64,000 bases of DNA from assembly GCF_037042905.1 (NCBI RefSeq), contig NC_087249.1, forward strand, positions 10,912,001 through 10,976,000. Direction: 5' to 3'. The notes under the pieces were generated by a model. It was not told the DNA's origin and did not search any database. It saw only the letters and a program-made list of their open reading frames with translations. The position numbers were made by a program, and so were the translations under genes. Within the stretch, counting starts at the first letter, position 1. Every line of letters begins with the position of its first letter. This DNA is from Lytechinus pictus (lineage: Eukaryota). Below, piece by piece: positions 5,073 to 45,831 of the stretch.

Positions 5073-6501
5073 ATGGCGGTCTTTGTAAAAGCTATTTGCC
5101 TTCTTGCTGGTGAGTATACTTTTTTTTTGAAAATAGTATTAGCATGGACCTACTACAACTGTTGTAGTAGGTCCATGGTATTAGCAAAAGGGACTACTCA
5201 GTGATATTTCGATATGGGGGGGGGGGCAACGACCTACTGGTGACGTTATAGTGATTCTACTCGCTTTTCGCCTCCCAGGAACAGGTGACGCCAAACAAAT
5301 AACAACTTTAAGAATAATAATAATGATAAAATAATTATTATGATAATAATAATGTAATAATAATCATTGTAATGATAATAATACTAAGAATAGTTATAAT
5401 TATCATTATTATTATCGTTATTCTTATTGTTATTTTTATTATCATCATCATCATTATCTTTATCATTAGTATTATTATTATTATTATAATTATATATTTT
5501 TTAATAGAATAGACTAAGATCTTAGAGGGTTACAGAGTTCAGACCTGTCCTTTTTATTCTCTTCGTTCTTCTTTCTCTCCACCGTTTTCATTAAATTTTC
5601 TCCCTTTTTCCACTACTTGAAAAAAGTCAAGGGGCGTCGCCCCAGGGACACCCTCCACTGCCCCCTAGTGCCGCTGCCCCTATATTAAGTTCTTATCTTC
5701 CAAAGCATTCTCATACCTAGTCATTATTCACTCGTGACTTCACTAGTCATAATGATTATACTTCTAATTGTGATATAGATTAAATATGTTGAATCGAGAT
5801 ATTTAATTCAATATCGAAGATATGACAGAATGGAACAATTAATGCGTTAAAGACACTATCGGGTTAATTTAGATTTCCCAACTTAACCTTTTATCATTCT
5901 TTATTCCATTCGCACAGCATTTTGCTTCACGATCGAAGCCAAAAACGACACTCGTACGGATCCTGCAAAGAAGCTAACTCCGCCCGCTTCACCTCCCCAA
6001 AACCAGTTCGACTTCGTGTTCAGTATCTATAATCAAACCACGCCAAGCCCTGAGAGTCCAACTACCACGAGGATGACCAGACCAAGCACTGGCAACCAAG
6101 GTACGATCCAGCCTAACATCGTAGGAGGGTCTACGAGCATCTACGACGACTCTTCCGAGGAGGAATCCGATACTGATACGGATGACGGCGAGGTCCAAAG
6201 TGCTCCTTCTTATGTCTTTACGGGAAACGAGAATCGAGTGAGCGGAAATACACGACCAATGTTTCCTGGACGGACTAGGCAGCGAGTCATGGCAGGAGAG
6301 CAGGATGGGGACCTCGTAGGAGACTACGAGGGTGATTTCTTTGGCGTTCACGACCATCTCGTCGGCAGGGCTACCGGTTCGTCTGCTCGTGGAGTCGGAA
6401 TCGCTCTCGGTTTGCTCGGACTGCTAACTGTGGTAATAGCTGCTGCTTTCCTCATCATCAGAAAACAAAGGAGTAATAACGCGAGCTTTGTTCGTATTTA
6501 A
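5073..6501 (+). CDS. G1: acidic single-pass type I membrane protein, P16-like architecture, ~206 aa, 2 exons
   Basis: Exon 1 5073-5109 (MAVFVKAICLLA+G, donor gtgagt); exon 2 5918-6501 after cacag, in frame. Signal MAVFVKAICLLAAFCFTIEA, acidic DDSSEEESDTDTDD, TM GVGIALGLLGLLTVVIAAAFLII, tail RKQRSNNASFVRI. Confidence 0.88.
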
Positions 6502-7110
6502 TGGGAATACATCGATGGTATTAATATGGACCCAATTACAGATTGTTCCAAAGCCAGTCGGTTTCTACGGAAAATTATTGAAATATGTACATTTATTTGT
6601 AATTGATTGATTAATTTATTAATATGTAATACGTACATTAATTCATATGTAATGTGTACTTTACTATATTGACCTCCTTGTATCATTAATTCATTTTCCC
6701 TTTTATTTCATAATTTATCTTGTTTACTTATTTCATTTCATTCTTAATAACTATGTTATCTTATCTTGATTTCGGGCTTGTTTTTGTTTTGGGGATTTTT
6801 GTGGGGGGGGGGGCTTCGTTTGTGATATGGACTAAGGTTGTCGTTAAATATTTTCATGGCGCCCTTTCTCAGATGTACCCCCCCCCTAAAACCAATCATC
6901 AAGGAATAATTTAGATTTGTAATTTTTAAAAACTATTTTGATCTTGACCAATTTAATATCATATTGAGACTAAATGTATTTTTTTCACAGTGATCCGATG
7001 AAAGTAAGCTTATGCAGTTCAGTTATATGTTATTTCAACAATTAAGCTTACAATTATAATGTTTCTTGGCGCTTTACATTGTAATTATTATTATCCCAGT
7101 CATTGGATCC

Positions 7111-7349
7111 AATCATACCCGCACATCCTTCTCCACTCCCTGGGGAACATTCCAACAAGAGTTCCAAGACTTATTTGCTAGGCATACTACATATAGGCAT
7201 TGGCGTACTGCCGGGTACCCATTGAAAAGCTGGGTTGGAGAGTAGATTGATGCCTTGCCAAACGATACTATAGGGCCGCGGCGGGTGGGATTCGAACTCA
7301 CAACTTTCTAATTACAAGGCGAGAGTCAGAACCGCTAAACCACGACGCT
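7111..7349 (-). mobile_element. tRNA-derived SINE copy
   Basis: Minus strand shows A-box-like gtggtttagcggtt and B-box gagttcgaatccc, followed by a non-tRNA body. Confidence 0.65.
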
Positions 7350-7774
7350 GTTAATGTATAATATCAATGTTGTTTTTGATTGTTTTCGTTGTGATTTGCT
7401 TTCTTTATGATACATTCATTATAAATAAAGAATACAGATTTTTCATGATGAATTCAATTTCTATGAGCTGGTCAGGGGATGAATTTAATTAGTATTCTTT
7501 TTTTTCAGTTTAATATGTGAATGTGTTGTCTCTACCGAACTCTGTTGTGTAAGATACACGAAATGAGAATAACACTTTTTTGGTGCGTTAGTGTAAAAAA
7601 AATTCTAAATAAATTCATTATTTGATTGTAAAACTAATACGTGATCTCTTGCAGACCTTTTTTGTTTTATTCTTTTTTTTGGGGTGGGGGTGGGCGGTTG
7701 AATGTGAAGATGTTTGTTTCGGACACTCTTAAGAAAAAAATGGATGGTTTATATTTACCCCCCCCCCCCACATT

Positions 7775-8057
7775 AGAAAGAACACAGTGCCCCCACAGTG
7801 TGTTCACAGTGTGGAACACGAAGTGAAATCACCTTCACACTGTTAAATTTGAGCATTTCAACACTGTGTATCACATATTCACATAGTCGACCATGTGAAC
7901 ACGCTGTGAACAGTCACCCTGTCGAGGTGTCCACAGTGTAAAAATATCTTCACACTGTTGAATTTGAGCATTTTAACAGTGTGAATAATATTTTCACAAA
8001 GTCCACTATGTGAACGCACTGTGATCACACTGTTATGTGTGACACTGTTCTTTCCAC
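7775..8057. repeat. MITE rich in cacagtgtg/cacactgt motifs (family of 37914 and 44977)
   Basis: Shares internal sequence tattcacatagtcgaccatgtgaacacgctgtg with 44977-45238. Ends gaaagaacacagtg / cactgttctttc. Confidence 0.7.
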
Positions 8058-8889
8058 CAAAGGTTGGTCCACAATTTACTAGCGCATACATGCAACTTTT
8101 GTGATATTTATCCGTTGCCATGGTAACAGCCAGAGACGAACTCGGTTTTGGTGGCTCCCCTTCTAAATTCAAATGTTAGTCCATAAGGAAGCTCTGTGCC
8201 AAAAATTGTGTTTTTATCCAGTCATTAACGGTAATCCAAAAAATTGACCCTAAGCAACCCTACTATCATAGACAGTCTAATACGTACCGCATGGGCTAAG
8301 CACATTCGGTCTAGTTTCATTTATCGTTTGCTGCAACTACTTTCCTTCAGCTTTAACACTGTAAACTAGTAAAACCTAGTCCAAAACCATTTTTATATAT
8401 CTTCAACCGACTAACTGTTACATGTAATATTTACTTACCGAAACAAATATTTTTTTCCTAGAAAAGGTATCAAGACCCAATCTTCAGTATGAAAGAGAAC
8501 GATAATTGCCGAATGTTTTCCGAACTAGATGCTTTGAAGTCATAACAAAATATGAGGAACATTTTGACAAGATTCGACTCTTTTTTTTTCTTTCTTTCAA
8601 GGCAAATCAACAAGATTAAGTGGAGTTATTTCAATCTCTTTCATATTCCATTAAACAATGATGCATTCGTGATGTCATATGTACGAATTACATTTCATTC
8701 ACTTGTCAGTACTAATAAAGCAGTCTTGTGGAGGTGAGCAATTTACCTTGGCAAGGGTTCAGGTTTTGTTCGGTTTCGTTTCGTACGTGATCTGTATTTT
8801 TTTTCTCAATGGGAGAGAGCGTTCTGATAGAATTGAGAGAAAGAAAGATTTTAATATAATGATGGTAAAAATATGATACTACTCTGTTA

Positions 8890-8893
8890 CTGT

Positions 8894-8925
<32 letters not shown>

Positions 8926-9099
8926 CTACTATTTGTACAACTACTACTACTACTGCTTCTACTCCTACTTCTACTATTCTTCTCATTCTGCTTCTTCGTC
9001 TCCGTCTTCCTTTTCTTCTTCTTCTTCTTCTTCTTCTTCTTCTTCTTCTTCTTCTACTTCTTCTTCTTCTACTTCTACTTACTACTACTACTTCTACTA

Positions 9100-9131
<32 letters not shown>

Positions 9132-9430
9132 GTACTACTACTACTACTGCTACTTCTACTACCATTACTACTACTATAATATTACTACTTCTGCTAGTAG
9201 TAGAAGAAGTATAGGCCTAATAGTAGAAGTTGTATAGTACTAGTAATAACGATAATGACAATTAGGATAATAATATTAATGATAAAATTGATAATGATCA
9301 TGATAATATTAATAATTACAACAACAGCAGAAGCAATAATAATATCAATAATCATAATAATAATGATAGTTTTAATAATGATAGTAATAATGATAATAAT
9401 AATACTGATGATAATAATGATGATGACGTA
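8890..9430. repeat. Compound trinucleotide microsatellite (TAC/TTC/AAT/GAT)
   Basis: Visible directly; it accounts for the poly-Y/S/T/I ORFs in the track. Confidence 0.95.
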
Positions 9431-10360
9431 TAGATGAATAAATTCCAATATCAATATAATTATTTATATACAGATTTAGACATTAACGATATAATTACCC
9501 TACCGTGTGGTTTCAATCTGGTTTGATGGGACAGCAGATTTTTCAAACCATGCGGTTGTAAGATATATGTTTGCATATAATTAGAAAATCAAAATTTCAT
9601 TAAAAATGTAATGCAAAGAAAAATCAGTAAATGTTCTTCTAATAGGGCATCTAATCGATGTATTTTAAAGTCCTTCGGAGAGGATGCGTATATCCTTAGT
9701 TCCCTTTATTTCTTTATCAGAGCGAGTTTTCGCTCAGTGGCGTACGGGACTTTAAGCGCCGAGGGAGTATGGTAAGGCCTTTAACATTTATTCCTATTTC
9801 TGAATTATTGATATCAAGAAATATGGAAGTAAATGTTAAAAGGGCTTGCCGTTCACCCGCGTCGCTGCAAGTCCGGCTTACACCGCTAAACAAACACTCG
9901 CCAATATCAAAACAATAGGTAAACAAAATCAAATTAATGAATAATGACATATTGATATGGCTTGATGAACCTACATTGAAACAAAGTGACTGATAGTATT
10001 CGATGTTCTTTGCCTGTCTGTGAAAGGAATGAAATCCAATATTCGACATACTGGACAGGAAAATGATTAATTTGAGGTCAAATTTGTGCTAAAATTTGAC
10101 ATTGCTAATCATTGCTTGTTTATTTAAGCAATCAACAAAAAACTTTGATGGAAAATCTCGTCCGAATTCGAGCATTATTAATAATGTCCTCGTTAATTTA
10201 GCGATGTTTAATTGAAAATAATAATAAAAGGAGACTAGTGCCAATGTATAGTTCACCTTTTGATAGTCATAGTCGCTTGTGTCACAGATATCAACTTTGA
10301 CAATTGTCCTAGCTGAATATTTTTTTATCATTATTAGTCGTTTTAGTTTGATCGGAAATG

Positions 10361-10367
10361 TATAAAT
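10361..10367 (+). promoter_or_regulatory. TATA box of G2
   Basis: cggaaatgTATAAAT, 136 nt upstream of the ATG. Confidence 0.65.
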
Positions 10368-10496
10368 ATTGCTGCGAAAAGCCATATTTTTCATACCTTA
10401 ATCCGGTTCGTTGCAGAGTCACTAGAAAATCAGGTGAATACTCCAACTCCTTTCTTTTTACGTGAAATCTTCGGATTTTAGCATCCCGCCATAAAT

Positions 10497-11750
10497 ATGT
10501 GTTCTTCTGGAAAACTTTTTGGTTTGTTCTTTCCTCTCCTTGGTAAGTTAATTTTCATTGTAATTATGATATGAATTGTAAAATTTTTCATAGGACTGTT
10601 TAGATAGAATTAACATCCACGCTGAAACTTGGTAGAACCACATGTATTAGCGGCAGAATCTTGGATCAGATACTCTGAAATAATGTCACCTGCTTAGCTT
10701 AGTGTACACTTGCTTTATTTGATATTAAGTTGGTGGTCTTCGCCTTTAGAAAAATGTATCTCTATGCATATTGCAGCTACATCTTTTAGGATTTTGTATG
10801 TGTAAAGAATGGTATTTGGTGTAATTTTTAAACGAGCCAACTCGAAATTGAGTTCTATCAATTCGATTAGTGAGATATTGATTTAAAATATTGATAATAA
10901 ATATCTAAACGTATATCATGGAGTTCAAGTGGGCTGTTTGATTATGAGAATATTAATTCATCTTAAATATAGTTCTTTTATATAACATATCCAGTTTACC
11001 TTAAAGTTATAGCCTACTGTATTTTTTTATAAATAACATATACAGGTTACCCAAAGAAGCCTTCTTTAACTTTTGGTATTATTCGTTAATGAGTCATTTG
11101 ATCATGTTGATTATTCCTGTAAAAAGAAAGAGAAGCAGTTTTGTTTTGGGGGGAGATAGGAAATAGGAAAACGATAAGGGGCGACATAGTAACAAAAAAA
11201 GATGGTGGTGTGATTTTATTATTAATTGCCTTATTATGCTTTTCATTTTCATTTCATTAAAAGTACCCCATTTTTATTTTCAGTTTTCTGTGTAATGACT
11301 GAGGCCAGTCGTGGGGCTGTAGCAATCCACATAGCCAATGTGCCTCAGGAGCAAACCCTCATGAATGTCCCAATGAATCAAGTCATGGCTGACGAATCAT
11401 CCGAAACAGTCGAATCATCCGAAACGTCCGAATCATCCGAAACATCCGAATCATCCGAAGTATCAGCCGAATCATCCGAGACAGACGGATTAACCGAAAT
11501 GGCCGAAGTCGAAACGGGAGTCGAAACAAATACGGACACTGCTGCCAATAACGCTGGCCTCATGAACCCAGCAGTACCGATTCCTGTCCGGAGCGGGAGC
11601 AAAGTTGGCGGGAATCTTGCTATTGTTTTCGGTGTTTTGGGGCTGGTTGCTGTGGTAGTCGTAGGAGCTTTCTTTGTTCTTCGCAGACAAAGGCGCTCTT
11701 ACGTTTTAGCAAGATATGAAGAACAGCAACTGATGATGGAGAAATCGTAA
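10497..11750 (+). CDS. G2: Ser/Glu-rich single-pass membrane protein, P16-like architecture, 170 aa, 2 exons
   Basis: Exon 1 10497-10542 (MCSSGKLFGLFFPLL+G, donor gtaagt); exon 2 11284-11750 after ttttcag (VFCVMTEA...). ESSETxE repeats, TM LAIVFGVLGLVAVVVVGAFFVL, tail RRQRRSY...EEQQLMMEKS. Confidence 0.9.
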
Positions 11751-11866
11751 TTTATGCTCTTCACTTGGTCATCTCAACTTAACAATGGAGTCAGAGGATG
11801 AAAAAAAATGTATTCTTGATGTTGAACGCATATAGTACAACGACTAAACTGCTCTGTATTATGTAA

Positions 11867-12170
11867 CCATAGGGATATTGCAATTGCAATGGGGACGGAT
11901 TCTACAATATGGTAAATCTATTGAAAATGCTCGTCATAACACTGTGAACAGCTTAGAGGTCTTTGCCAATGGTTGGTCGACCGGGACAGCAGATCGTCCT
12001 TAGATTTGGACCTGACGAAAAATTGCAAATTTGTGGTTTGTCCAGAGTCCAGGACGACACTGCTGTTATTCACCGATTTTCCACAGAGACTCCTTTGTCA
12101 TGAAGGTCCTTTGACAATATATTTTCTGTGTTCTAGAAGGCGTCTGCGTACTGGTTGCGAAAAGAGTCAT
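11867..12170. repeat. Decayed copy of the fold-back element at 43974-44290 (also downstream of G3 and G4)
   Basis: Shared stretches such as gacggattctacaa, tttgtccagagtccaggacgac and tgtcatgaaggtc. Boundaries approximate. Confidence 0.75.
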
Positions 12171-13094: not shown

Positions 13095-13320
13095 GATTGA
13101 TTGATTGATTGATTGATTGGATAACTCACTAATTGGTGGTTGGTCGATTAATGATGTTCATGAGTAGAAGGATGAATGGATAGATTAATTAATAGAATGA
13201 TGGATGGTTGGACTGATGGATGGAATGACCGGTGGATGGATTGATTGATGGATAGAAGGATTCGGGATGGATAGATTGATGACTAGATGGATGGATTGGT
13301 GGATGAATAAAAAAGATTGG
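13095..13320. repeat. (GATT)n/(GGAT)n degenerate microsatellite, paralogous at ~21320-21760 and ~29490-29840
   Basis: Visible directly. Confidence 0.85.
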
Positions 13321-13652
13321 TGGTTAAAAGGAAGAAGGTGTTATGTGATTTTGCCTCGGAGGGAGCAATGTAGCCTTGGGTTTGGGTTAAAAGTAACACA
13401 TGTTATAATTTGTTTAGATTTTCCAGAGCACTTTATAATGAAAAAGTCTTTAACTCGTTTCGAATACAGCCCCCTCCACCACCCCCCCCCCCTTTCTCTC
13501 TCTCTCTCTTTCTCTCCCTCCATGTTTCCCTCCCATCTCATTCTCTCATTTTGTCTCGTTTTTCTCCCCTTTTCTTTGTCTCAATCGTTGTTTGATTCTG
13601 ATTTTAGTAGATATATTGAATATTGATATTCTTTCTAGCAAATATAATAATA

Positions 13653-14267: not shown

Positions 14268-15447
14268 CTATATATATTTGTGATTCATGTGGGTCATGGG
14301 GGAGGAAGGGGTTACATAATGTGACTGGGGCTTGGGACGAGAGTCTCTTAAACTGAGTCTGTAGTCATCAATCTGCTGTCGGTCAAGACATCGTGGGAGG
14401 TATGCCTGCATTGTACGATACCACCCCATAATCTTCTCCTGGGTGTTGGCGTCGATGTCTCTCCTGGCCATGCGACAAACGATGTCGACACGCCACGCTC
14501 CATAGTCATAGCCTTCCCTGTTGAGCAGCCTCTCGTTCTCCTATAGCCTGTTACATCTCAGGGCGTGCCAAGTCCCTCTTGACAGAAGCATTGAAGACAT
14601 CAGAATGAGCATTCTCACAGAAATTTAGGAAAGGTGAGTATGGCGGCAAAAGCTTCAGCTGAATATCTTGCTGAAAATTGGGTGGAAGTTGTGATCTTAC
14701 ATGTGGCCTGCCATTGTCGTATATCAGGACGATTGATTGGTTCTCCTTGCGGGAATCGAATGGAGCACTGTCGTGCCGTCTCCGCAAGGAATTCCTCGAA
14801 AATCTCTCTGGTGATCGTCTCGGTAGAGACCATGCGGTGCAACAAGCCTTTCTTTCCTGAAACAACATAAGTGACGTTGCACCTTTTGCCTCGTTGACCA
14901 TGTCACCATGGACAACTCTCCTAACAGGCTGACCTCGTTGTGCCCTTCCAAAAGAACGACGGGTCCAAATGTTGCAGCCGGTCTCGTCAATGTGGGCGAC
15001 AACTCCTTCGGCGAGAAACCATTGCGCATACTCCATTCGACGATCGAGCGTTTACTGGTGAATTCCTTCCATCCGGCACATCCTCAGCGAACTTCAGTGT
15101 GATGAACATTCCATCTAGAGTCCTGGATATAGTTGAAATGGAAACTGTTGGCTTCCAGGTCTCTTTTCATCTGATCTAGAGTGGCCAGCAGATTAAGATC
15201 AATTATGGCCTGAAGGCGGCGAGCTCTCATGTCTTCATCGATCTTATGATTTTTGGCGCCTCCCCTCGCCAGCTTTTTGCCGTCTGCCCGTTCTGAGATA
15301 AGTTGCTACGTTGGATGTGGCTGTTGAATGTTTGATGCCCAGTGCATCAGCTAACTCAAGGTAGTCAGCTTGGTGGCCTTCAAATGCAGCGATTAGTATA
15401 TCTCTATCTTCGTTGGGTATGCGCTGGTAGCTTACGTGTCCTGCCAT
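14268..15447 (-). pseudogene. Frameshifted IS630-Tc1-mariner-type DDE transposase
   Basis: HTH-like N-terminus (ELADALGIKHSTATS) and catalytic motifs HIDETG, LIYDNGRPH and LPPYSPFLNFCE, spread over several frames. Confidence 0.85.
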
Positions 15448-19051: not shown

Positions 19052-19700
19052 ATGTGTTCTTCTGGAAAACTTTTTGGTTTGCTCTCTCCTCTCCTTGGTA
19101 AGTTAATTTTCATCGTAACTATGATATGAATTGTAAAATTATTCTTAGGACAGTTTAGATAGAATTAACATCCACGCTGAAACTTGGTAGAACACTAGAA
19201 CCACATGTATTAGCGGCAGATTCTTGGATCGGATACTCTTTAATAATGTCACCTGCTTAGCTTAGTGTACGCTTGCTTTATTTAATATTAAGTTGGTGGT
19301 CTTCGCCTTTAAAAAATGTATCTCTATGCATATTGCAGCTTTATCCTTTAGGATTTTTTTATGTGTAAAGAATGGTATTTGGTGTAATTTTTAAACGAGT
19401 CAACTCGAAATTGAGTTCTATCAATTCGATTAGTGAGATATTGATTTAAAATATTGATAATAAATATCTAAAAGTATATCATGGAGTTCAGGTGGGCTGT
19501 TTGATTATTATAATAATAATTCATCTTAAAGTTATAGTTCTTTTTAGATAACATATCCAATTATCCTTAAAGTTATAATGTAGTTCTTTATAAATAATAT
19601 ATCCAGGCTACCCAAAGAAATCTTCTTCAACTTTTGGTATTATTCGTTAATGAGTCATTTGATCATGTTGATTATTCCTTTAAAAAGAAGGAGAAGCGGA

Positions 19701-19733: not shown

Positions 19734-20337
19734 AAGATAGGAAATATGAAGACGATAGGGGGCGACATTGTGAAAATGGTGGCGGTGACAGTGGTGTGAT
19801 TTTATTATTAATTGCCTGATTGTGCCTTTCATTTTCATTTCAATCTAACCCATTTTCATTTTATTTTCAGTTTTCTGTGTAATGACTGAGGCCAGTCGTG
19901 GGGCTGTAGCAATCCACATAGCCAATGTGCCTCTGAAGCAAACCCTCATGAATGTCCCAATGAATCAAGTCATGGCTGACGAATCATCCGAAACAGTCGA
20001 ATCATCCGAAACGTCCGAATCATCCGAAACGTCCGAATCATCCGAAGTATCAGCTGAATCATCCGAGACAGACGGATTAACCGAAATGGCCGAAGTCGAA
20101 ACGGGAGTCGAAACAAATACGGACACTGCTGCCAATAACGCTGGCCTCATGAACCCAGCAGTACCGATTCCTGTCCGGAGCGGGAGAAAAGTTGGCGGGA
20201 ATCTTGCTATTGCTTTCGGTGTTTTGGGGCTGGTTGCTGTGGTGGCCGTAGGAGCTTTCTTTGTTCTTCGCAGACAAAGGCGCTCTTACGTTTTAGCAAG
20301 ATATGAAGAACAGCAACTGATGATGGAGAAATCGTAA
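19052..20337 (+). CDS. G3: paralog of G2, 170 aa, 2 exons
   Basis: Exon 1 19052-19097 (MCSSGKLFGLLSPLL+G, donor gtaagt); exon 2 19871-20337. Differs from G2 at PLKQ, SGRK, IAFG and VVAV. Confidence 0.9.
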
Positions 20338-22779: not shown

Positions 22780-23958
22780 TTATATATATTTGTGATTCAT
22801 TTGGGTCATGGGGGAGGAAGGGGTTACATAATGTAACTGGGGCTTGGGACGAGAGTCTCTTAAATTGAGTCTGTAGTCATCAATCTGCTGTCGGTCAAGA
22901 CATCGTTGGAGGTATGCCTGCATTGTACGATACCACCCCATAATCTTCTCCTGGGTGTTGGCGTCGACGTTTCTCCTGGCCATACGACAAACGATGTCGA
23001 CACGCCACGCCTCCATAGTCAGCCTTCCCTGTTGAGCAGCCTCTCGTTCTCCTATAGCCTGTTACATCTCAGGGCGTGCCAAGTCCCTCTTGACAGAAGC
23101 ATTGAAGACATCAGAATGAGCATTCTCACAGAAATTTAGGAAAGGTGAGTATGGCGGCAAAAGCTTCAGCTGAATATCTTGCTGGAAATTGGGTGGAAGT
23201 TGTGATCTTACATGTGGCCTGCCGTTGTCGTATATCAGGACGATTGATTGGTTCTCCTTGCGGGAATCGAATGGAGCACTGTCGTGCCGTCTCCGCAAGG
23301 AATTCCTCGAAAATCTCTCTGGTGATCGTCTCGGTAGAGACCATGCAGTGCAACAAGCCTTTCTTTCCTGAAACGACATAAGTGACGTTGCACCTTTTGC
23401 CTCGTTGACCATGTCACCATGGACAACTCTCCTAACAGGCTGACCTCGTTGTGCCCTTCCAAAAGAACGACGGGTCCAAATGTTGCAGCCGGTCTCGTCA
23501 ATGTGGGCGACAACTCCTTCGGCGAGAAACCATTGCGCATACTCCATTCGACGATCTAGCGTTTACTGGTGAATTCCTTCCATCCGGCACCTCCTCAGCG
23601 AACTTCAGTGTGATGAACATTCCATCTAGAGTCCTGGATATAGTTGAAATGGAAACTGTTGGCTTCCAGGTCTCTTTTCATCTGATCTAGAGTGGCCAGC
23701 AGATTAAGATCAATTATGGCCTGAAGGCGGCGAGCTCTCATGTCTTCATCGATCTTATGATTTTTGGCGCCTCCCCTCGCCAGCTTTTTGCCGTCTGCCA
23801 GTTCTGAGATAAGTTGCTACGTTGGATGTGGCTGTTGAATGTTTGATGCCCAGTGCATCAGCTAACTCAAGGTAGTCAGCTTGGTGGCCTTCAAATGCAG
23901 CGATTAGTATATCTCTATCTTCGTTGGGTATGCGCTGGTATCTTACGTGTCCTGCCAT
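22780..23958 (-). pseudogene. Second copy of the frameshifted IS630-Tc1-type transposase
   Basis: Near-identical to 14268-15447, with the same broken frames. Confidence 0.85.
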
Positions 23959-27231: not shown

Positions 27232-28513
27232 ATGTGTTCTTCTGGAAAACTTTTTGGTTTGCTCTCTCCTCTCCTTGGTAAGTTAATTTTCATCGTAACT
27301 ATGATATGAATTGTAAAATTATTCTTAGGACAGTTTAGATAGAATTAACATCCACGCTGAAACTTGGTAGAACACTAGAACCACATGTATTAGCGGCAGA
27401 TTCTTGGATCGGATACTCTTTAATAATGTCACCTGCTTAGCTTAGTGTACACTTGCTTTATTTGATATTAAGTTGGTGGTCTTTGCCTTTAAAAAATGTA
27501 TCTCTATGCATATTGCAGCTTTATCCTTTTAGGATTTTTTATGTGTAAAGAATGGTAATTGATGTAATTTTTAAACGAGTCAACTCGAAATTGAGTTCTA
27601 TCAATTCGATTAGTGAGATATTGATTTAAAATATTAATAATAAATATCTAAAAGTATATCATGGAGTTCAGGTGGGCTGTTTGATTATTAGAATAATAAT
27701 TCATCTTAAAGTTATAGTTCTTTTTAGATAACATATCCAATTATCCTTAAAGTTATAATGTAGTTCTTTATAAATAATATATCCAGGCTACCCAAAAAAA
27801 TATTCTTCAACTTTTGGTATTATTCGTTAGTGAGTCATTTGATCATGTTGATTATTCCTTTAAAAAGAAGGAGAAGCGGATAATTTTTTTTTTTTTGGGG
27901 GGGGGGGAGAAGATAGGAAATATGAAGACGATGGGGGGCGACATTGTGAAAATGGTGGCGGTGACAGTGGTGTGATTTTATTATTAATTGCCTGATTGTG
28001 CCTTTCATTTTCATTTCAATCTAACCCATTTTCATTTTACTTTCAGTTTTCTGTGTAATGACTGAGGCCAGTCGTGGGGCTGTAGCAATCCACATAGCCA
28101 ATGTGCCTCAGGAGCAAACCCTAATGAATGTCCCAATGAATCAAGTCATGGCTGACGAATCATCCGAAACAGTCGAATCATCCGAAACGTCCGAATCATC
28201 CGAAACATCCGAATCATCCGAAGTATCAGCCGAATCATCCGAGACAGACGGATTAACCGAAATGGCCGAAGTCGAAACGGGAGTCGAAACAAATACGGAC
28301 GCTGCTGCCAATAACGCTGGCCTCATGAACCCAGCAGTACCGATTCCTGTCCGGAGCGGGAGCAAAGTTGGCGGGAATCTTGCTATTGTTTTCGGTGTTT
28401 TGGGGCTGGTTGCTGTGGTAGTCGTAGGAGCTTCCTTTGTTCTTCGCAGACAAAGGCGCTCTTACGTTTTAGCAAGATATGAAGAACAGCAACTGATGAT
28501 GGAGAAATCGTAA
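27232..28513 (+). CDS. G4: paralog of G2/G3, 170 aa, 2 exons
   Basis: Exon 1 27232-27277 (G3-type); exon 2 28047-28513 (G2-type, with a private F-to-S change in the TM and a T-to-A change). Confidence 0.9.
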
Positions 28514-31450: not shown

Positions 31451-32376
31451 TTAAGCAAAATTATCTCTTCTGTGCTTCCTTATTGCAAAGACAGCCCCAG
31501 CAATGACGACAGCGACTACTCCAACCGCGGCAAGAGCGATTGCAACGGTCTGTCCTGAAGCCGCTGACTCCCTGCCGAATACGCCATTGTGCCCTCGAGC
31601 TCTGGTGTTGGGGAGCATATTCCCGGCTACTTGGTTTCCACTACCGACCGAGACCGGTGCACCAGCAGGAGCAGCCGCGGCGTTATTACCGGTAGCCGCA
31701 GCGTTGTTACCGGTAGCTGCGGCGTTGTTACCGGTAGCCGCGGCGGCAATGTCCTCGTCCGCATCGTTGTCCATGTCGTCCTCGGATGATTCGGTAGATT
31801 CGGAACTCACACTGTCGTCGTCATCTGTAGTGGTTGTGTTCATCTGGGTTGTGGGGGTCGTGTCACCCATGGTCTGCTTCTGTGGTACGTTTAACCCTTG
31901 CCTTGCCTCGGCCATAATACAGAAAACTGTGGAGAGGACGTTGAAATACCGTTTAGACGTTTTCCTTGAGCTTCAAAGAATATGGGGGCAGTCTTTAGTC
32001 AGTCACATAAAGATAATCCATGGTAATTACCAGAACTGATCTTTATGTGACAGACTAAATTCAAAACAAAAATCATATCATATAACATTAAAATGATATT
32101 TGTTTTGAATAATTCATAATGAGATAAACTTATTCGTGACGGTGTAGACATACTGATTAAGCAAACAACTAACAAACTTTAAGATGATTTAATCGAGAAA
32201 AGTGAAAACCTTTAAAGTTGGGCTCTTCCATAATAATGTCGTATCACCCCCCCCCCCCATAATATTTTATTTACCACCGGCAGTCAGATATGAGGTTTTA
32301 TAAAGAGTAAGAAAATAAGCATGTACTTACCAAACAGAAGACAAAAAAGACCAAACATCTTTCCAGTAGAAGCCAT
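31451..32376 (-). CDS. G5: acidic single-pass membrane protein, P16-like architecture, 173 aa, 2 exons
   Basis: Exon 1 32376-32331 (MASTGKMFGLFCLLF+G, donor gtaagt); exon 2 31926-31451 (VFCIMAEA...). DDDDSVSSESTESSEDD, (ATGNNAA)x3, TM VAIALAAVGVVAVVIAGAVFAI, tail RKHRRDNFA. Confidence 0.9.
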
Positions 32377-37238: not shown

Positions 37239-37345
37239 GGGAGACGTGAGGGGCATACTCGTCAGATTGCCCCTCGGCTTGATAGGTACAACTTCAAGTA
37301 GCAGTACTGATTTGAAGAACGTAGGTTTGCTATCATCATAGAACC

Positions 37346-38658
37346 ATGGTTTCATCAGCAAAGATAATCTGCCTTGTGGCTTTTCTGAGTGGTAAGATGT
37401 CAATATTGCTTTCTTAATTTTGTTATACCGACATGGCATGTCGCACCGGTGAATCCGACCCCGGACCGTACAAATCTATTACGTTATTACCAATAGCATA
37501 TCATCGATCGGTTTGGTTTCAATGTCTTGGTGTGACTGTAGCAATATAGGAAGCGAATGGGGAGGAGGCTGCTGCCCCCTGAAAAAAATAACCTGCTTAT
37601 CAATTAACCTTTTTTTTTCATATTCTATCCAAAAAGGTTTGAGACCTTCAATCTTAAGTTATAATACTAAAAAAATAAATCGACTTGGTCACTTTGCTCC
37701 CTCGTTTGTATGCGTATACTTTGTAATAAAAAATCAGCGTTGTGGCTTTTAATTACTTTTAGTCACCTATAATCTATAACCATTTTAGGATTTTTTTGGA
37801 TAATCCATAAAACAATCCGGGGTTTTAGAATTCTGTGAAATGATGAAATAAAAATTATATTACGAGCATTATTATCTTGGGCGAGAGTTTTCAATTTGGT
37901 TTTGATCCATTGACAGCAGAATAGACAATGTGAAAATATTATTCACACTGTTAACAGTGTGAAGATATTTCCACACTGTGGACAACACGAATGTGTGACT
38001 GTTCACATGTGTTCACATGGTCGATTATATGAATATGTGATTCATACTGTTGAAATGCACAAATTTGACAGTGTGAAAGTGATATCATATTGTGTTCCTC
38101 ACTGTGAACACACTGTGAGACACTGTGTTCTTTTTAGTAGGGAAACCACAACCATGGTTAAGATCATAGTATAATTTCAATTTCTTCGCAACATTTCTTT
38201 ATCTTTTAGCACTTTGCCTGGTGGCAGAAGCAAGAGCCAAATTTCCAGGTGTGGCAAAGCATATCGGATCACCTCAGAAGCAAACACAGATCAACCCTCA
38301 AGCCCCAATGGCCCAGACCGACGCATCGGCCTCTGCTTCATCAGAATCAATGTCATCGGAAACAGACGATGACGACGCCGCTGCTAACACCGCCGCCGCC
38401 GCCGCTCCAGCCGCTGCAGCACCAGCACCAATCGGCGGCAACCTCCCGATGTTGGCTGCGAACGGACGACAGTTGCCGAACACCGGAGCTCGGGACCCGA
38501 ATCAGATGTTCGGTAGGGGATCTGGAAGTTCGGGAAAGAGCGTCGGGGTTGCTTTCGCCGTTCTTGCGCTGATTGCCGTGGTGGTAGCAGGAGCATACTT
38601 TGGAGTCCGGAAATACAGACCACATCTCGTTTCACATTTCACATCAGAGGACGAATGA
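37346..38658 (+). CDS. G6: acidic single-pass membrane protein, P16-like architecture, 164 aa, 2 exons
   Basis: Exon 1 37346-37391 (MVSSAKIICLVAFLS+G, donor gtaaga); exon 2 38210-38658 after ttttag (ALCLVAEA...). SSESMSSETDDDD, TM VGVAFAVLALIAVVVAGAYFGV, tail RKYRPH.... AATAAA at 38857-38862. Confidence 0.9.
37914..38142. repeat. cacagtgtg-family MITE in the G6 intron
   Basis: Reverse-complement similarity to 44977-45238 and 7775-8057. Confidence 0.6.
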
Positions 38659-39602
38659 AAAATCAAAACTTTTCTGTTTTGCTTGACCGAACATTATCTT
38701 AAGGGATTTGTATCATGTATTATGAAGAAAATGTCCAAATTTTATCATCTATTTAACTGCCTTTGTCATGTTTATTGTATATTTGCTGTGATATGTGAGC
38801 GTAACATCGAGTTTTAATATTTTTTCCTTCCTTTTAACATCATGTATTGTCCACTCAATAAAGTCATCTTGTTATAACCATATTACCTTTGTCGTTATAT
38901 TGAAACTTTTTTTTCTTTAGAAAAATGATCTAATAAAAAATCTTTGTTGAAAAAGAGAGAGAAAAGAACGTTGCAACTTTTCATCTTTAATCGTTCCACG
39001 ATAATGACTGATGGAAATGAAAGAGGGAAATTGGGAAATTGGGAAATAGGGAAACCAGCAAAGACAGAGAGGGAGAGAGAATGGTGGTGAAGTTTAAACA
39101 AGAACGCGGGGGCAGAGCTAGAGTAGGCCGACATTAACACATGCAGAACTTTTTTCGCGCGGGGAATTAATACATTAAAAAAGTGTTTGAGGGGGGCAAG
39201 CGAACGAGCTGACTCTGAGAGCATTTTCTTTTTAAAATTATCTTATTGAAATTGATTGATCTTAAATTAACCTTTGATGTTTTGGGGGGAAAATAAAATT
39301 GTGGAGAGGGGTCAAGATACCAATCCGATCCCATACGCATAGTTGTGCTGAAGAAAATTTGTGATCTGTTAATTTTTGTAATATGGTTTTCACATTGTGA
39401 CACCCTTCGTTTAGTCTTTCTTTCTCTATTCCTCTCGCTCTCCTTTCTCCCTCTTTCTATCCATCCTTCCTCTCCCCTTCCTCTGCACTCTACGCCTCTA
39501 AATTTTCCCTTTCCTTCTCCTTAATCACTTTTTCCTACTTTTCTTCTTCTTCCTCCTCTTCTTCTCATCCTCTTCTTCGTCTTCTCTTTCTTCTTATTTT
39601 CT

Positions 39603-39633
<31 letters not shown>

Positions 39634-41015
39634 ATTATTATTATTCCATATATTCTCCTTCCTCTTCTTTTTCTTTTTTATTTTCCCTTATTCATCATTG
39701 CACCTTCACCAGTCCACTTCTATCCTCTTTGCTTCTTTCTTTTATATGTCTGGTTCTTTTCCTCATTTTTTCTTCTTTTATGAAATAATACATATTTTAC
39801 ACATACACTTATATACATGCGGTCAAATATTTATTTCCTTAAATATCTTTATCATAAAGTGATTGACATTTTGTCGCAACAATACTGTATTTATTCATCA
39901 ATATAATATAATCAAGAACACGATGATGCAACTTACTTTAAAAGTGAATATTAATCAAAGTTTGTTTCCAAAGTATGTGAGCGTATATGAAGATTATAAT
40001 ATCATAAGATTACAAGATAATGAGAAGAAAAGTGATATTTGGAACTAATACGATAAAAATCAGTAAGCAGCTGAAAGACGAAAATTTCAACAGCATGTTA
40101 TTTGTTAAGTAAATGTCTTCTTCACACCGTTTCGGGTGAATCAACCGATATAATAATTTCATTATTCATTCGGTGCAAATTGATTCTACAGTGTGCGAAA
40201 TTGTATTTTACTTTAATATTGAAATCAACGGAGGTAATTTTGCACTGATTCATATTATGCTACGATGTATGTTACTATATACCTAATATATTTGACTTCG
40301 TTATATTGCTTATTATATTGAAAATGTAAAACGGACGTCAACAACACCCAATATATCTTAATTTAAATCACATTATCTTGGAGTGTTGAGTGTCAAATCT
40401 GACAGAAATAGAACCCACTATTAAACTTGTTGGTCAATGTTTAACCAATGCTTAACAAACTTTGGTTCGTATGCTTATCCGGTTAACAATATGTTTTGTT
40501 TCTCAATATAATAATTAACATTCATCTTTTTGGTTAAGTGAGCCCAACATCATGACCAACATGACCAATGTGACCACATATATCGGTATGAATATGACCG
40601 AATGTTGAGCAGCATTTTCTGTACACAAATTGGTCAATTATTCTTGACCATGCTTCGGCCCAGTTTTGGCAAATTCTAACCCAAACTCTGTTACCAAACG
40701 ACATCTACGCAAGTTTTAAGGATTGTATTGCAGGGACCACTCGAAAATTAGGTAACAGCTTAAGTTTCTACTCAAGTTAATAAAAGATTATGATTTTAAA
40801 GTTATCATTCCATCCATTTACTTTATATAGGCCTTGTATGTTTTTTAAAATGAAAATTTCGTATATAAGATAATGAGAGCATAGCTTTAACTCATGCTTA
40901 TATTAATTCAGAATTATTTCATTTCGTCTAATATTGAATTAAAAAAATTATGAGATACATATAGTATTAGCATTTTCTTATCTTAAAAAATTCCTGAATA
41001 TATATGTGGCATTAT

Positions 41016-42248
41016 CTAGGCTTCCAATAAGGCGGGAGAAATGTGTCTGTACTTCTTGACGACGAAGATGACTGCTCCTGCAATGAATCCGACGGCTGCT
41101 AATACGGCAACAGCGACGCCAGCTGCACTTGATGAGGTGTTCCTTCTCAGGTGTGAGCCGAGGGGAGCTGGAGCTATCCGAGCAGGACCGGCTGCTACTG
41201 CTGCGGCTGGATTGGGACCTGGAGCCGGGTTGGGGCCTGGAGCCGGAGCTGGATTCGGGGCTGGAGCTGGGTTTGGAGAGGAAGCGGGACCGGGAGCCTC
41301 TTCTGAAGAGTCTGACGTGGAAGAAGCACTCTTGCTCCCTGAGGTGATTGCAGTCGGTGTAGGTTTGGCGGCGGGAGAAGGAGCAGGTGTCGGTTGATTC
41401 GGTGGAGCTACAGTTGTAGGTTGATTCGGTGGAGCTACAGTTGTAGGTTGATTGGGTTGTGTCTGGGCCAAGATACCAACTGAACAGGCTGTCATAGTAG
41501 AAACAAATGTTTTGATTATTTGCACGAGTTTCAGTATTTAATGTTAAAGCGATATAAAGTTACAAAAACATACACAATTGTTATAAATGTGACATTTAGA
41601 TAAAAATAACAATAGACTACATAATTAATATCAACTAACTAGTAGGACTATGAATGATTAGAAAGCAGAGGCCAGCTATCAGAAGCACAGTACTTGGAAG
41701 AATAGATGCCGTGAGAAAACAGCTACATATAAAAAGAACGATGATTACACAGATCAGCATTATAATGTAAATCATATTCTAAAATGTGACTAAATATGAA
41801 ATTTAAAAATCTCCTCAAATGAAGCTATCTTATATTTATAGAATTTGAAGAAAAACTGGTGCAAGAACGTCGAGTGACTGACACTTTCAATTTCTAAAGT
41901 AACCTTTTTTTCATTCTTATTTCGTTTATTTCCAAAGTAAACGATTGGTCGCTTAATTTCTTACATCTTAATGAAGAAATAAACATGAGATATTTTGCAG
42001 AATTTTACGTACAATCGACAAGATCATGATTCAGATAGACTGGTAACTGGGGAGGCTGCTAAAAAGCGAATCTTATAGACTGCAGCCTCCTATTTTAAAA
42101 AAAATCATAAATATTATATACCAAATAATAAACATCACTAGCATACATAACAATTGATTTATAGAAAATATTTAAAAGGAAAAAAAGTGATGCAAATTAT
42201 ACCTAGAACGATGACGAGGAAGGTGCCGAAGATTCGAACTGATGCCAT
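41016..42248 (-). CDS. G7: Pro/Ala/Asn-rich single-pass membrane protein with a Ser-acidic patch, 172 aa, 2 exons
   Basis: Exon 1 42248-42203 (MASVRIFGTFLVIVL+G, donor gtataa); exon 2 41488-41016 (ACSVGILA...). PNQPTTVAP repeats, STSDSSEE, PNPAPAP repeats, TM AAGVAVAVLAAVGFIAGAVIFVV, tail KKYRHISPALLEA. Confidence 0.88.
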
Positions 42249-42372
42249 GTTCGGAGTTTGAAGATGCCGGATTCTGAGCTACGATGATAAAGATAATATA
42301 AAATCAAGCTGTTCTGCAGTGACCATGAATAGGTTTCAGAATAAGTTGATATCTCTGGACTTTCTCTCGCCT

Positions 42373-42379
42373 TTTTATA
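42373..42379 (-). promoter_or_regulatory. TATA box of G7
   Basis: tgTATAAAAAgg on the minus strand, 131 nt upstream of the ATG. Confidence 0.7.
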
Positions 42380-43574
42380 CATTTTTCATTTCATTTTGTT
42401 TACCAAACGGGATGCTCTCCCAGCACGAAACGCAACAGGATATCATCTGCAATCCAACTTTTGGTCCATTAATTGACCGCCGACATGGTAATTGATGTTA
42501 TACGTCTTTGTACATTATCATGATATAATCATATACTCTCGCTACATTTTGATTTATCATTAAAATGACAGCTTAAAAGCTCTAAACAAAGGCATTGAAG
42601 TATTGATTTAATTATTTATTTTGTTATCCTTCTCTTCCCCTCTTACCCCTTCCCCCTCTCTTCCCTCTATCTATCTGTCTCCCTTTCCATCTCTCTCTTT
42701 CTCTCTCTCCCTCTTTCTCCTACTCTCTCTCAATTGCTCCCCCTCTCTCTCCCTCCATCAATCTTTCCTTTTCTCCTTGCTTCTTCTCCTCATCCCCCTC
42801 CTCCTCTCAGGCTCCCCCTCTCTCTTTCAATATTTGTATTTAAATCTCTCACTCGCACTCTCCCATCCCCTACTTCTACACAGTGAATACCATACTCCCT
42901 GTAAAGTACACTCAAATTCGAATTCATTTCTAAATAACTGTTTTTATTAATTTTTCACTCCGAATTTCAGAAGATCATCAACGTTTCTGGAGACGAGACC
43001 ATGAAAAAGATACATACTTGATTATGCAACAATCAAATTATTTTTTTATTTTCATTACTGTCCCGAACATAATTATACATGTACCTATTTTTTCTTCGTT
43101 TCTCCAAAAGATATGGAATGTCTAGTCGTAATTAATATCCCTTTCATACCCCCCCCCAGAAAAACCCAAAATGTTTATGAAATTAGCTATGTAAATTTTT
43201 AGAAAAATTGCACCTATATACGGTCTACATCAAATCCGAAGTGATTAATCACTTTAATCACCCATTAAAAAAAATAAAAGTACACTTATACAATATATAT
43301 ACATGAAAAACATACACATAAAACTACAGAAAGATCTTATCTTACGCGGGAAGCTTTCTGGTGGCCAGTCTGTGCTTCAATAATGGTTTGTACGATACTG
43401 AACTTTGATATGGTATAGAACATCCGTCAATATTCCCTCGGATGGGATATTGATAATAAGCCTCACAGTTTCTAATGAAGTATTCATCTACTTTTAAAAC
43501 AAGTTGACACATTGTTACCAAGAATTCTTATAGCATTTCCATTTATTTGAATGTGATATAAAGAGCAATGTTGA

Positions 43575-43672
43575 TTAAATGCATTGTTCACAGGAATAGG
43601 GACCGTGGCCGGGGATCGAACCTCGGACTTTCATGTGTCTTGTCAGGCGCCTTAGACCACTCGGCCACGGCA
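43575..43672 (-). mobile_element. tRNA-derived SINE head
   Basis: Minus strand gtggccgagtggtctaaggcg (A box) and ggttcgatccc (B box); no complete cloverleaf. Confidence 0.6.
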
Positions 43673-43973
43673 CTCTTCGGTACCATCAAATGCTTATGCT
43701 ACAGTCACACACCAAGGAAACCGACTCCAAGCCGACCGTTGACATGTCATTGGAAATAACGTAATAGCTTAGGTCGGTCTGGAATCGGATTCGTAGGTGT
43801 GGCTGAGGCTATAGTAGATCATATTTCTTTAGAATGACTCTTTTATTTAGTTTTTTTTTTCTTTATGATTCATACCTTAATCAATTACCGATATATTATG
43901 TTTGTTACGTAATGAAAATTGTATTGTATACAAATGTTATGAATGCAGAAGAAAACAATAAATCAAATCAAAT

Positions 43974-44290
43974 CAATAGCGAGTTTTTCGCAATTACAAC
44001 GGAGACGGATTCTACAACATAGTAAATCTATTGAAAATGCCCGTCAAATCACAATGGACAGCTCAGAGGTCTTTGTTGAAAATTTGAGAATCGGGACGGA
44101 AGATCGTCTTAAGATTCGGAGTTGACGAAAAATTGCAATTTGTCGTTTGTCCAGAGTCCAGGACGACGGCTGCTGTTTTTATTCCCCGATTTTCGACAAA
44201 GGCTGCATTGTCATGAAGGTCTTTTGACAATAGATTCTCTACGTTCCAGAAAGCGTCAGCGTAGTGATTGCGAAAACTCTTGTGCTATTG
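43974..44290. mobile_element. ~317 bp fold-back/MITE just downstream of the G8 stop codon
   Basis: Imperfect terminal IRs caatagcgagtttttcgcaatta / tgattgcgaaaactcttgtgctattg. Homologous to the 3' flanks of G2-G4. Confidence 0.65.
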
Positions 44291-44305
44291 TACAGCGCCA
44301 ATAAG

Positions 44306-45831
44306 TTATACCCGCACAACAACAGGGAAGTGGTGCCTGTATTTCTTGACCACGAAGACGATCGATCCCATGCCAAGGCCTACCATGATCATGGCTGCGA
44401 TGGCGATGCCGAACGTCGCGTTCGATGACGATGACGTCATCCTGACATCTTGGTTGCTAGGCATGTGATCCGGCCTACCCTTTATCGGGAGTTGGTTTCC
44501 AGACACGACCCCCGCGTCATTGACCAGCTCGACGTTGGTGTTCGGCAGTGCCCCGATGTTGATGGAGGCCGCGGTGCTACCGTTTGCCGTGTCGACGTCG
44601 TTGTCGGTGTCGGTATCGGTATCAACATCCATATCATCTTCCTCGGACGATTCCTCAGAGAGACTGCCGCTTTCAGTCACCTCAGTCATACCCGTTGGTT
44701 CTACCTCCTGATTGGCGGGAGCACCATAGAAGGGTTCTATCCGTAGCTCAGCTGGCTGCTGCTGCTTTACTTCCATTATGGTATCTTTTAAAACCACCCT
44801 CGCTCCTGCGAGGTTGCTGACCATACTGCAGGCTTGAAAAAATAGATATTCCGAAATAATGTTAAGAAATTTGTTTTCAGCTCTCTCTTTTTTTAATGTT
44901 GGTACTTGCTGGCTAATGTGAAGTGAGGGTTATACTCATTGGCGCCAACGAAATCGACTCCAAACCTACCGATCGTCCCGCTGGAAAGAGCACAGTATCC
45001 ACAGTGTGTTCACAGTGTGTGCCACATTGTGTGTCATAGTGTGGTACACAATGTGTAATCACCTTCACACTGTTATATTTGAGCATTTCAACTGAGTGTG
45101 AAAAACATATTCACATAGTCGACCATGTGAACACGCTGTGTACAGTCACACTCTCGAAGTGTTCACAGTGTGAATAATATTGTCACATAGTCCGCTTTGT
45201 GAACACACTGTGATCACACTGTGTTCGCTCCAGCAGGGGTATGTCATTGGTATAATAGCTTTTATCGGTAAACAGTCGGTCTCGATCGCCGGTGTGACAA
45301 TAACACGAAATCAGAGTGCATACTTTTATTCTAATTTTCAATTATGTGATTTTAGTATCATTATTCATAACAAAGATAAGAAAATCTTTTCTCCGATATG
45401 CTCAAATTAAAAATTAAAAGTTCATACTGAAGAACTAAATCTTGATGCGCTGTCTCTTTAAATTGTTTATACATTTTTGATTTTTGATTCACCAAAATAA
45501 TCCCTCATCCCCCCCCCCAAAAAAAAAAAAAAAAAAAAACAGAAAAAAAAATGTGCGAAATTCTTACATTTCGGAATTCAATTTCATTTAAACCATAATG
45601 ACTATAACCATTTCGACACTAACATGTAATAATGTTGTATTTCAGCGTTAGCCATTCATTGCTTAAACCCATGGACCTGTTGAAATCCATGATTAAACAT
45701 TAAACCAACGAAAAATTGCCCAACTGCAACCCTTCGGTAACATACATTTAAAAAAATGAATATTGAATTTGTATTGGTCCCAACTTACTTAAAACCATGA
45801 AAAGAGCGGGCAGACTTGTACGTGATGGCAT
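44306..45831 (-). CDS. G8: acidic single-pass membrane protein, P16-like architecture, ~189 aa, 2 exons
   Basis: Exon 1 45831-45789 (MPSRTSLPALFMVL+A, donor gtaagt); exon 2 44832-44306 after a ttttttcaag acceptor (TCSMVSNLAGA...). SEESSEEDDMDVDTDTD, TM FGIAIAAMIMVGLGMGSIVFVV, tail KKYRHHFPVVVRV. The AAG acceptor is less common. Confidence 0.82.
44977..45238. mobile_element. CCC..GGG-ended MITE (CACTA/EnSpm-like) in the G8 intron
   Basis: Ends cccgctggaaagagcacagt / actgtgttcgctccagcaggg; gt dinucleotide on both sides; nested in an older palindromic MITE. Confidence 0.65.

Follow-up and report, generated by a model that had tools for sequence, protein, structure and literature searches.

A tandem array of P16-like genes for predicted membrane proteins with an acidic serine patch in Lytechinus pictus

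A 64-kb stretch of Lytechinus pictus chromosome C5 (C5:10912001-10976000; hereafter, the window) contains the greater part of a tandem array of two-exon genes, at least 11 in number; eight of them (G1 to G8) lie within it. These genes are predicted to encode small type I membrane proteins of an echinoderm-restricted family, with an acidic, serine-rich patch in the ectodomain. They certainly belong with a group of genes that adjoin P16, a gene essential for sea-urchin skeletal growth, and probably share ancestry with P16 itself. We lean, cautiously, towards reading the array as P16-related, with membrane-tethered products whose patch would be phosphorylated by Fam20C and would bind Ca2+ or calcium carbonate.

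The eight genes share one structure. The window is ~36% G+C and its open frames are short. Exon 2 is in each case an open frame of 145-174 amino acids (aa), preceded by a pyrimidine tract and an AG acceptor, and encodes the acidic Ser patch, a hydrophobic run of 19-27 residues and a basic stop-transfer. A matching exon 1 of 37-46 nucleotides (nt), that is, 36-45 nt from the ATG plus one base, was found upstream of all eight, with a GTAAG, GTGAG or GTATAA donor. The split codon (Ala, Val or Thr) falls inside the signal peptide in every gene; thus, all eight introns are in phase 1. Signals for a cleavable N-terminal signal peptide are present: the ATG and a hydrophobic run in exon 1, and a c-region (C-x-x-x-EA) that opens exon 2. 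NCBI models returned by a homologue search carry the additional N-terminal hydrophobic segment. Each gene product is 150-205 aa in size, and the G6 exon is 99% identical to LOC129261808 (“uncharacterized protein”, Lytechinus pictus). A first-pass annotation had quoted a patch peptide for each of the eight genes. All of these peptides are present in the places and frames it gave, each within an open frame that also encodes a transmembrane (TM) helix. Exons and patches, numbered from the first base of the window, are as follows.

5073-5109, plus strand: G1 exon 1 (ATG, N-terminal part of the signal peptide, phase-1 GTGAGT donor); matches the N-terminus of NCBI model P0011, a sister copy
5918-6501, plus strand: G1 exon 2 (remaining signal peptide, ectodomain, TM, tail, stop)
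6145-6171, plus strand: G1 acidic Ser patch, DDSSEEESD
10497-10542, plus strand: G2 exon 1
11284-11750, plus strand: G2 exon 2
11394-11480, plus strand: G2 patch, (ESSETx)5 (ESSETVESSET... in G2 to G4), with an 18-nt tandem repeat as its coding sequence
19052-19097, plus strand: G3 exon 1
19871-20337, plus strand: G3 exon 2
19981-20067, plus strand: G3 patch, (ESSETx)5
27232-27277, plus strand: G4 exon 1
28047-28513, plus strand: G4 exon 2
28157-28243, plus strand: G4 patch, (ESSETx)5
32331-32376, minus strand: G5 exon 1
31451-31926, minus strand: G5 exon 2
31775-31807, minus strand: G5 patch, SSESTESSEDD
37346-37391, plus strand: G6 exon 1, coding part (transcript contig starts at 37281); from the spliced contig
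38210-38658, plus strand: G6 exon 2, coding part (transcript contig runs to 38822); from the spliced contig
38338-38376, plus strand: G6 patch, SSESMSSETDDDD
42203-42248, minus strand: G7 candidate exon 1, predicted only (ATG, hydrophobic run, phase-1 GT donor fitting the exon 2 acceptor)
41016-41488, minus strand: G7 exon 2 (Pro-rich ectodomain)
41298-41315, minus strand: G7 patch, SDSSEE
45789-45831, minus strand: G8 exon 1; matches the N-terminus of NCBI model P0010
44306-44832, minus strand: G8 exon 2
44633-44659, minus strand: G8 patch, SEESSEEDD

The nearest relatives of the array adjoin P16. We searched the whole 812 Mb L. pictus genome with a profile of the eight window proteins. Three further copies lie directly upstream of the window, at C5:10894016, 10900380 and 10906555, and represent the duplication of a pair made up of one U-type and one G1-type gene. 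Outside the array, the search returned four loci at C5:4.06-4.12 Mb (R1 to R4) and one on C20. The P16 locus is on the same chromosome, 6.8 Mb from the array. The forward primer published for L. variegatus P16 (Alvares et al., PMC2758014) matches exactly at C5:4131070-4131095, in P16 exon 1. The exon downstream encodes the published P16 peptides and the published acidic SDTSSDTGSDDDSIDDDGSSDDSSED patch, followed by a TM helix and YRKRQ. Thus, the four relatives near 4.1 Mb flank P16. Their profile matches are at C5:4063610 (E 1e-22), 4095325 (2e-14), 4112076 (1.6e-6) and 4116411 (5.8e-4), 15-67 kb from P16, whose signal peptide is also split by a phase-1 intron. P16 was reportedly studied by Cheers and Ettensohn in 2005. 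We infer that the P16-adjacent genes are probably the P16rel1 and P16rel2 of the literature, said to have been defined by Livingston et al. in 2006.

In a maximum-likelihood tree, U1 groups with R2 and its Strongylocentrotus purpuratus orthologue (97/89), and G1 groups with R1 and its orthologue (96/88). The window array and the P16-adjacent cluster therefore interleave. P16 itself sits on a long branch and joins two sea-star-type proteins weakly (86/56). The Patiria miniata protein P0024 acts as a bridge, matching the family in hhalign at 96% and sharing 51% identity with the TM and tail of P16.

Known relatives are confined to echinoderms. An exhaustive protein profile search returned 32 proteins at E <= 1e-3. 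Credible relatives (E <= 1e-6) come from L. pictus, L. variegatus, S. purpuratus, Diadema setosum, Patiria miniata and further assemblies, all of them echinoderm; those of S. purpuratus are LOC105440559/60/61, LOC105443729/30 and LOC100891699. Five weaker candidates (P0026, P0029, P0030, P0032 and P0037) were rejected as family members, being matches weaker than ~1e-5 to unrelated single-pass proteins through the TM region only. Among the P16-adjacent genes, R3 (L015; G000:C5:4110576-4113704, plus strand, 1039-1635) has its Ser/Glu patch replaced by (PDAPD)n repeats followed by DYEEYE. It retains the N-terminal motif, the TM helix and the KKYRHHIPVIVLK tail.

The proteins share one architecture from end to end. 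In an alignment of the eight window proteins with further relatives, similarity spans the full length. Common motifs are the C-x-x-x-EA end of the signal peptide, PQKQT(M)FD.PF.Q near the N-terminus, the acidic Ser patch, GGN..GN.LP and a juxtamembrane/TM block (R.SGSS.x.GVGIAFAVLGL) in which the SGSS motif is juxtamembrane; many members also have an RKYRHxIPVxVRV tail. The first-pass annotation had called the ectodomains unrelated. They instead align over their whole length, with PQKQT-FD-PF-Q, GGN..LP and R.SGSS in common, and are thus divergent homologues. The single TM helix lies near the C-terminus and is followed by R/K-rich residues (RKQR, RRQRR, RKHRR, RKYR or KKYRH), with the stop 9-22 residues on. 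In every cluster gene, the patch, with motifs such as SSE, SSEE or SSESSE, begins 65-92 residues ahead of the helix. Topology signals (signal peptide, TM helix and positive residues beyond the helix) predict that the patch lies on the luminal/extracellular side. The ectodomain is predicted to be intrinsically disordered: AlphaFold, run on the family alignment, gave it a pLDDT of 43-55 and no fold, and the sole confident element was a helix at 110-140 (pLDDT 86-94).

Two further features recur in the alignment. Several members, for example U1 (L013:1450-1950) and R2 (L014:1492-2049), have a basic R-x-x-R type site (RKTR, REAR or RKAR) just ahead of PQKQT-FD-PF-Q, a possible target of proprotein convertases. 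In many, the C-terminus is a hydrophobic V-x-V (VIVRV or VVVRV) that may serve as a PDZ-type or sorting signal.

Acidic and serine residues are clustered beyond what composition predicts. We compared the densest 12-residue S/D/E window of each ectodomain with 5000 composition-preserving shuffles. Clustering was significant in 11 of 11 cluster genes (p from <0.0002 to 0.029), and also in R1, R2, R4 and P16 (p 0.0002 to 0.0054; P16 p 0.0002). R3 and the C20 relative (L017) were not significant in this test. Each ectodomain has 2-6 S-x-E sites, a count that gave p 0.002-0.035 in G1 to G7 and 0.09 in G8 against shuffles. The ectodomains of G6 and G7 have only two Glu each, and all four lie within SSE. 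Comparable S/D/E density is reached by five of ~60 non-family open frames of at least 100 aa, simple Ser repeats included, and none of the five has an S-x-E site; two rows of that comparison (L019) belong to the family gene U1. A compound microsatellite at 8855-9214, which reads as poly-Ser/Tyr/Thr in several frames, is the source of most background S-rich open frames.

The patch is also conserved among orthologues. It lies at a homologous position in every cluster member, and is found in L. variegatus, S. purpuratus, Diadema setosum and further echinoderm sequences. From 15 pairwise orthologue alignments, we compared 10 distinct non-congeneric pairs, after removal of pairs with L. variegatus and of two sets of redundant rows (P0003 and P0008). 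Patch identity equals or exceeds that of both flanking ectodomain segments in most of these pairs, for example G6 and its S. purpuratus orthologue (0.88 vs 0.71/0.77), G7 and P0022 (0.75 vs 0.49/0.40), and U1 and its Diadema orthologue (0.69 vs 0.33/0.39). It is not above both flanks in the S. purpuratus pairs of R1 (0.62 vs 0.59/0.64) and R4 (0.78 vs 0.72/0.83). The first-pass annotation had named a comparison of this kind as a test that could refute its reading, and the serine counts do not refute it. Patch Ser in an S-x-[E/S] context was retained in 41 of 45 cases, as against 37 of 72 for other ectodomain Ser (Fisher p 6e-6), although the 41/45 figure is somewhat inflated by aligning one Ser-rich stretch to another.

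These results bear on the possibility that the SSE patch is a by-product of repeat slippage in a disordered linker, without specific function, and that selection acts on the TM helix, juxtamembrane segment and tail. Such an origin is consistent with the 18-nt minisatellite that encodes the G2 to G4 patch, with a patch that cannot be aligned residue by residue among distant paralogues, and with a TM helix and tail that are the best-conserved parts of the proteins. The lack of SSE in four wider relatives and the S/D/E-rich windows among background frames point the same way. Those background windows, however, are without S-x-E, and both Glu of G6 and of G7 fall in the motif. Slippage would also have to account for a patch at the same relative position in every cluster lineage and in Diadema, and for the preferential retention of its serines. 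We therefore regard slippage without function as improbable.

The patch is expanded in G2, G3 and G4. The first-pass annotation described a five-fold amplification in these genes, which we trace to an 18-nt tandem repeat (6.2 copies, 79% matches). Each of the three genes sits in a tandem unit of 8.2-8.6 kb, and the units are 89-98% identical. In two of three pairs, the copies resemble each other more in exon 2 than in its flanks; for G2 and G3, the values are 98.3% vs 92.9% and 86.9%. This mosaic pattern of similarity suggests gene conversion. Among the G2 to G4 copies, non-synonymous differences are at least equal in number to synonymous ones. A homologue search with G3 returned only one model, P0025 (XP_054755821.1, LOC129261809, 97 aa). 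In P0025, a portion of the exon is translated in a different frame (“PHECPNES”), and the acidic patch is missing altogether. Thus, the intact G2 to G4 frames (11283-11747, 19870-20334 and 28046-28510) are not represented in the annotation. Between these genes, the tandem units also carry a 161-aa open frame (14551-15036 and 23062-23547, both on the minus strand) that, judged by eye, looks like a Tc1/mariner-like transposase fragment. The segments at 13.8-16.8 kb and 22.3-25.3 kb are 97.8% identical. Elsewhere in the window, there is a run of Ns at 46963-47282 and an 814-bp segment at 61658-62471 that matches its own reverse complement at 79% identity, a large imperfect palindrome.

G6 is transcribed and spliced. 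The RNA evidence covers the G6/G7 region (37.2-43.2 kb). A 724-nt contig from run X1 joins 37281-37390/1 to 38209/10-38822 across a GT..AG intron with 0 mismatches. Runs X6 and X7 were silent across 37.2-43.2 kb except at a repeat near ~37.95 kb, with nothing for G6 or G7; run X4 resembles DNA. G7, its candidate exon 1 included, had no RNA support in the runs examined. The short repeat lies within G6 intron 1 (37924-38117), where depth is high in all four runs, raw RNA reads included, and loose ends are numerous. A dispersed, transcribed repeat outside the G6 mRNA is the probable explanation.

Could the array be largely non-functional, made up of recent duplicates, pseudogenes or haplotype duplications in the assembly, with a motif shared through recent common descent? 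The closely similar G2 to G4 units, their excess or parity of non-synonymous differences, the patch-skipping P0025 as the only NCBI model of this type and the lack of RNA support for G7 all fit such a history. Against it, all eight exon 2 frames are open and the ATG exons, donors and acceptors are intact. The paralogues G1, G5, G6, G7 and G8 are old, each having its own orthologues in other genera, G6 yields a spliced transcript, and exon 2 of G2 to G4 is more alike than its flanks. A largely dead array is thus very improbable.

A role for the patch can be proposed from what is published on P16. P16/UTMP16 is phosphorylated, binds apatite (400 mM phosphate is required to elute it) and is located at syncytial membranes that touch mineral (Alvares et al. 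2009, PMC2758014). The binding was ascribed to its Ser-Asp patch, and CK1/CK2 were predicted as the kinases (PMC2758014). Given this biology and the shared architecture, a Fam20C and mineral-binding reading of the window genes is a reasonable extension. We rejected CK2 as the patch kinase on topology, since CK2 is cytosolic and the patch luminal. On the same topological ground, we rejected a sorting motif of the furin/PACS-1 type, which is a cytosolic acidic cluster. The 2009 study pre-dates the identification of Fam20C, which is to our knowledge the only kinase class known to act on S-x-E/pS in the secretory lumen. The patch matches the S-x-E/pS consensus of Fam20C, the kinase that the first-pass annotation had named, and is predicted to lie on the luminal side. 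The Fam20 domain (PF06702) is found above cut-off at three loci of the genome, on C10, C12 and C15. In sea urchins, Sp-Fam20c_1 has been found in tooth matrix (PMC2830187), and Fam20c is among the biomineralisation genes of skeletogenic cells (PMC10131483).

Under the Fam20C proposal, the patch would pass through the Golgi lumen, where a Fam20C-type kinase would phosphorylate its S-x-E and S-x-pS sites. The cell surface would then carry a tethered, densely anionic cluster of phosphoserines like that of caseins. On the model of P16/UTMP16, this cluster may bind Ca2+ or nascent calcium carbonate at the mineral-facing membrane. Short-repeat slippage, of 18 nt in G2 to G4, and tandem gene duplication could then tune the amount of patch.

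The likeness to P16/UTMP16 extends to the same chromosome, two exons, a phase-1 intron in the signal peptide, a disordered ectodomain, an acidic Ser-rich patch, and a single TM helix near the C-terminus with a short basic tail. The P16-adjacent R1, R2 and R4 are clear sequence relatives of the window genes and carry SSSSEE, SESSEE and SSSSGESS. P16 proper differs in several ways, and its sequence similarity to the window genes is limited to the TM region. Its patch is Asp-based (DSS/SSD, as in dentin phosphoprotein) and lies 33 residues from the TM helix, whereas the patches of the window genes are Glu-based (SSE) and lie 65-92 residues away. P16 has a Gly-rich N-terminal region, whereas the window genes have PQKQT-FD-PF-Q, which is absent from P16, and often a KYRHxIPVxVRV-type tail.

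A non-skeletal role also has to be weighed. The products could be small membrane proteins of a generic anionic, glycocalyx or mucin-like kind, comparable to podoplanin, glycophorin, syndecan and SNORC, that provide non-skeletal cells with surface charge, anti-adhesion or ligand capture. The patch would then carry O-glycans, glycosaminoglycans or plain charge, unrelated to mineral. Language-model look-alikes in the ESM Atlas are podoplanin, TMEM154, syndecan, SNORC and glycophorin, with scores of <=0.88. A Pfam scan of eight members returned nothing above any cut-off, with weak matches to Mucin (19 bits vs 34.7) and Podoplanin (15.3 vs 30) and no match to syndecan. The G7 ectodomain is Pro/Thr-rich and mucin-like, and the conserved SGSS juxtamembrane motif contains Ser-Gly dipeptides. 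Skeletogenic expression was not seen in the reads over the G6/G7 region. The Alx1-type palindrome TAATNNNATTA, a proxy for skeletogenic regulation, is not enriched (5 sites vs 4.84 expected, none near promoters); it is an uninformative proxy, as the P16 promoter locus (L001) also has none.

The look-alikes, however, all fall below the thresholds of the tools that found them, and are analogues in overall architecture and size only. Their cytoplasmic tails are unrelated to those of the window proteins, which are without the syndecan C1/C2/EFYA motif. The nearest true relatives adjoin P16 and interleave with the array in the tree. Echinoderms, to which the family is confined, are characterised as a phylum by a calcite endoskeleton. 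In G6 and G7, the sole Glu residues stand exactly two positions after Ser, which favours S-x-E over bulk charge. We consider a non-skeletal glycocalyx role unlikely, though it is the most serious of the alternatives.

Several observations weigh against the Fam20C and mineral-binding reading. The only transcript seen in the G6/G7 region is that of G6, from run X1 (tissue not stated), and none is tied to skeletogenic cells. P16 matches the family directly in the TM region only (hhalign 74.6%, E 2.7e-5, 32 columns), and TM-only matches of similar strength are also seen with unrelated fungal and bacterial proteins; this match is hence not specific. All NCBI models are “uncharacterized”, and every named record is either that or spuriously named. 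A search for the LOC identifiers of the genes found no mention of them in the papers covered. The first-pass annotation held that every family member keeps SSE. This is true of the eight window genes and the three upstream copies, but L015, L017, S. purpuratus LOC105440561 and P0027 are without it, the last two keeping a D/E/T acid patch. With SSE absent from L015, L017, P0019 and P0027, the motif appears dispensable in parts of the family. Finally, conservation of the TM helix and tail equals or exceeds that of the patch; in distant G8 pairs, the tail scores 0.85-0.92 and the patch 0.35-0.54. The patch had been put forward as the conserved functional core. It is indeed conserved and selected, as its Ser retention indicates, yet the TM helix, juxtamembrane segment and cytoplasmic tail match or surpass it, and the patch is thus not the sole conserved core.

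Comparison with vertebrates suggests analogy. SCPP/SIBLING proteins and caseins are Fam20C substrates with SSSEE-type phosphoserine clusters. The SCPP family descends from SPARCL1, and its members are secreted, have no TM helix and have introns that are all in phase 0. With SCPP/SIBLING proteins and caseins, the window genes share disordered products of the secretory pathway, S-x-E/pS clusters, fast-evolving tandem arrays and acidic-repeat expansion. An association with calcium biomineral is a further likeness to SCPP/SIBLING proteins, one that the window genes would have through P16 homology only. The window proteins are nevertheless non-homologous, membrane-anchored and echinoderm-only, and have a single phase-1 intron, in contrast to the many phase-0 exons of SCPP genes. 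The mineral would be calcite rather than apatite, and phosphorylation of the window proteins is predicted. The window genes are an analogue, not a member, of the vertebrate SCPP family. A broader and more tentative possibility is that the P16 superfamily comprises echinoderm-specific, membrane-tethered Fam20C substrates whose SSE patch touches mineral, an independently evolved, cell-anchored counterpart of SCPP/SIBLING proteins. Paralogues might then serve different skeletal elements (larval spicule, test, spine and tooth), with slippage tuning patch length.

The idea of mineral binding is not new in principle, as it restates the published view of the P16 Ser-Asp-rich domain. The novelty lies in recognising an array of P16-like genes, uncharacterised and in part mis-annotated, with an E-type S-x-E patch. 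Within this array, G2 to G4 can be flagged as missing or mis-modelled in the current annotation. Few effector proteins have been shown to be indispensable for skeletal growth in sea urchins, and P16 is one of them. We place it as one divergent, probable member of a family with at least 16 loci in L. pictus, every one of them labelled “uncharacterized” in RefSeq. Natural variants are at hand, with E-type and D-type patches, one-fold and five-fold patches, and patchless members. The shared luminal S-x-E cluster offers a testable mechanism for this family, in which a membrane-tethered acidic patch would be phosphorylated in the Golgi.

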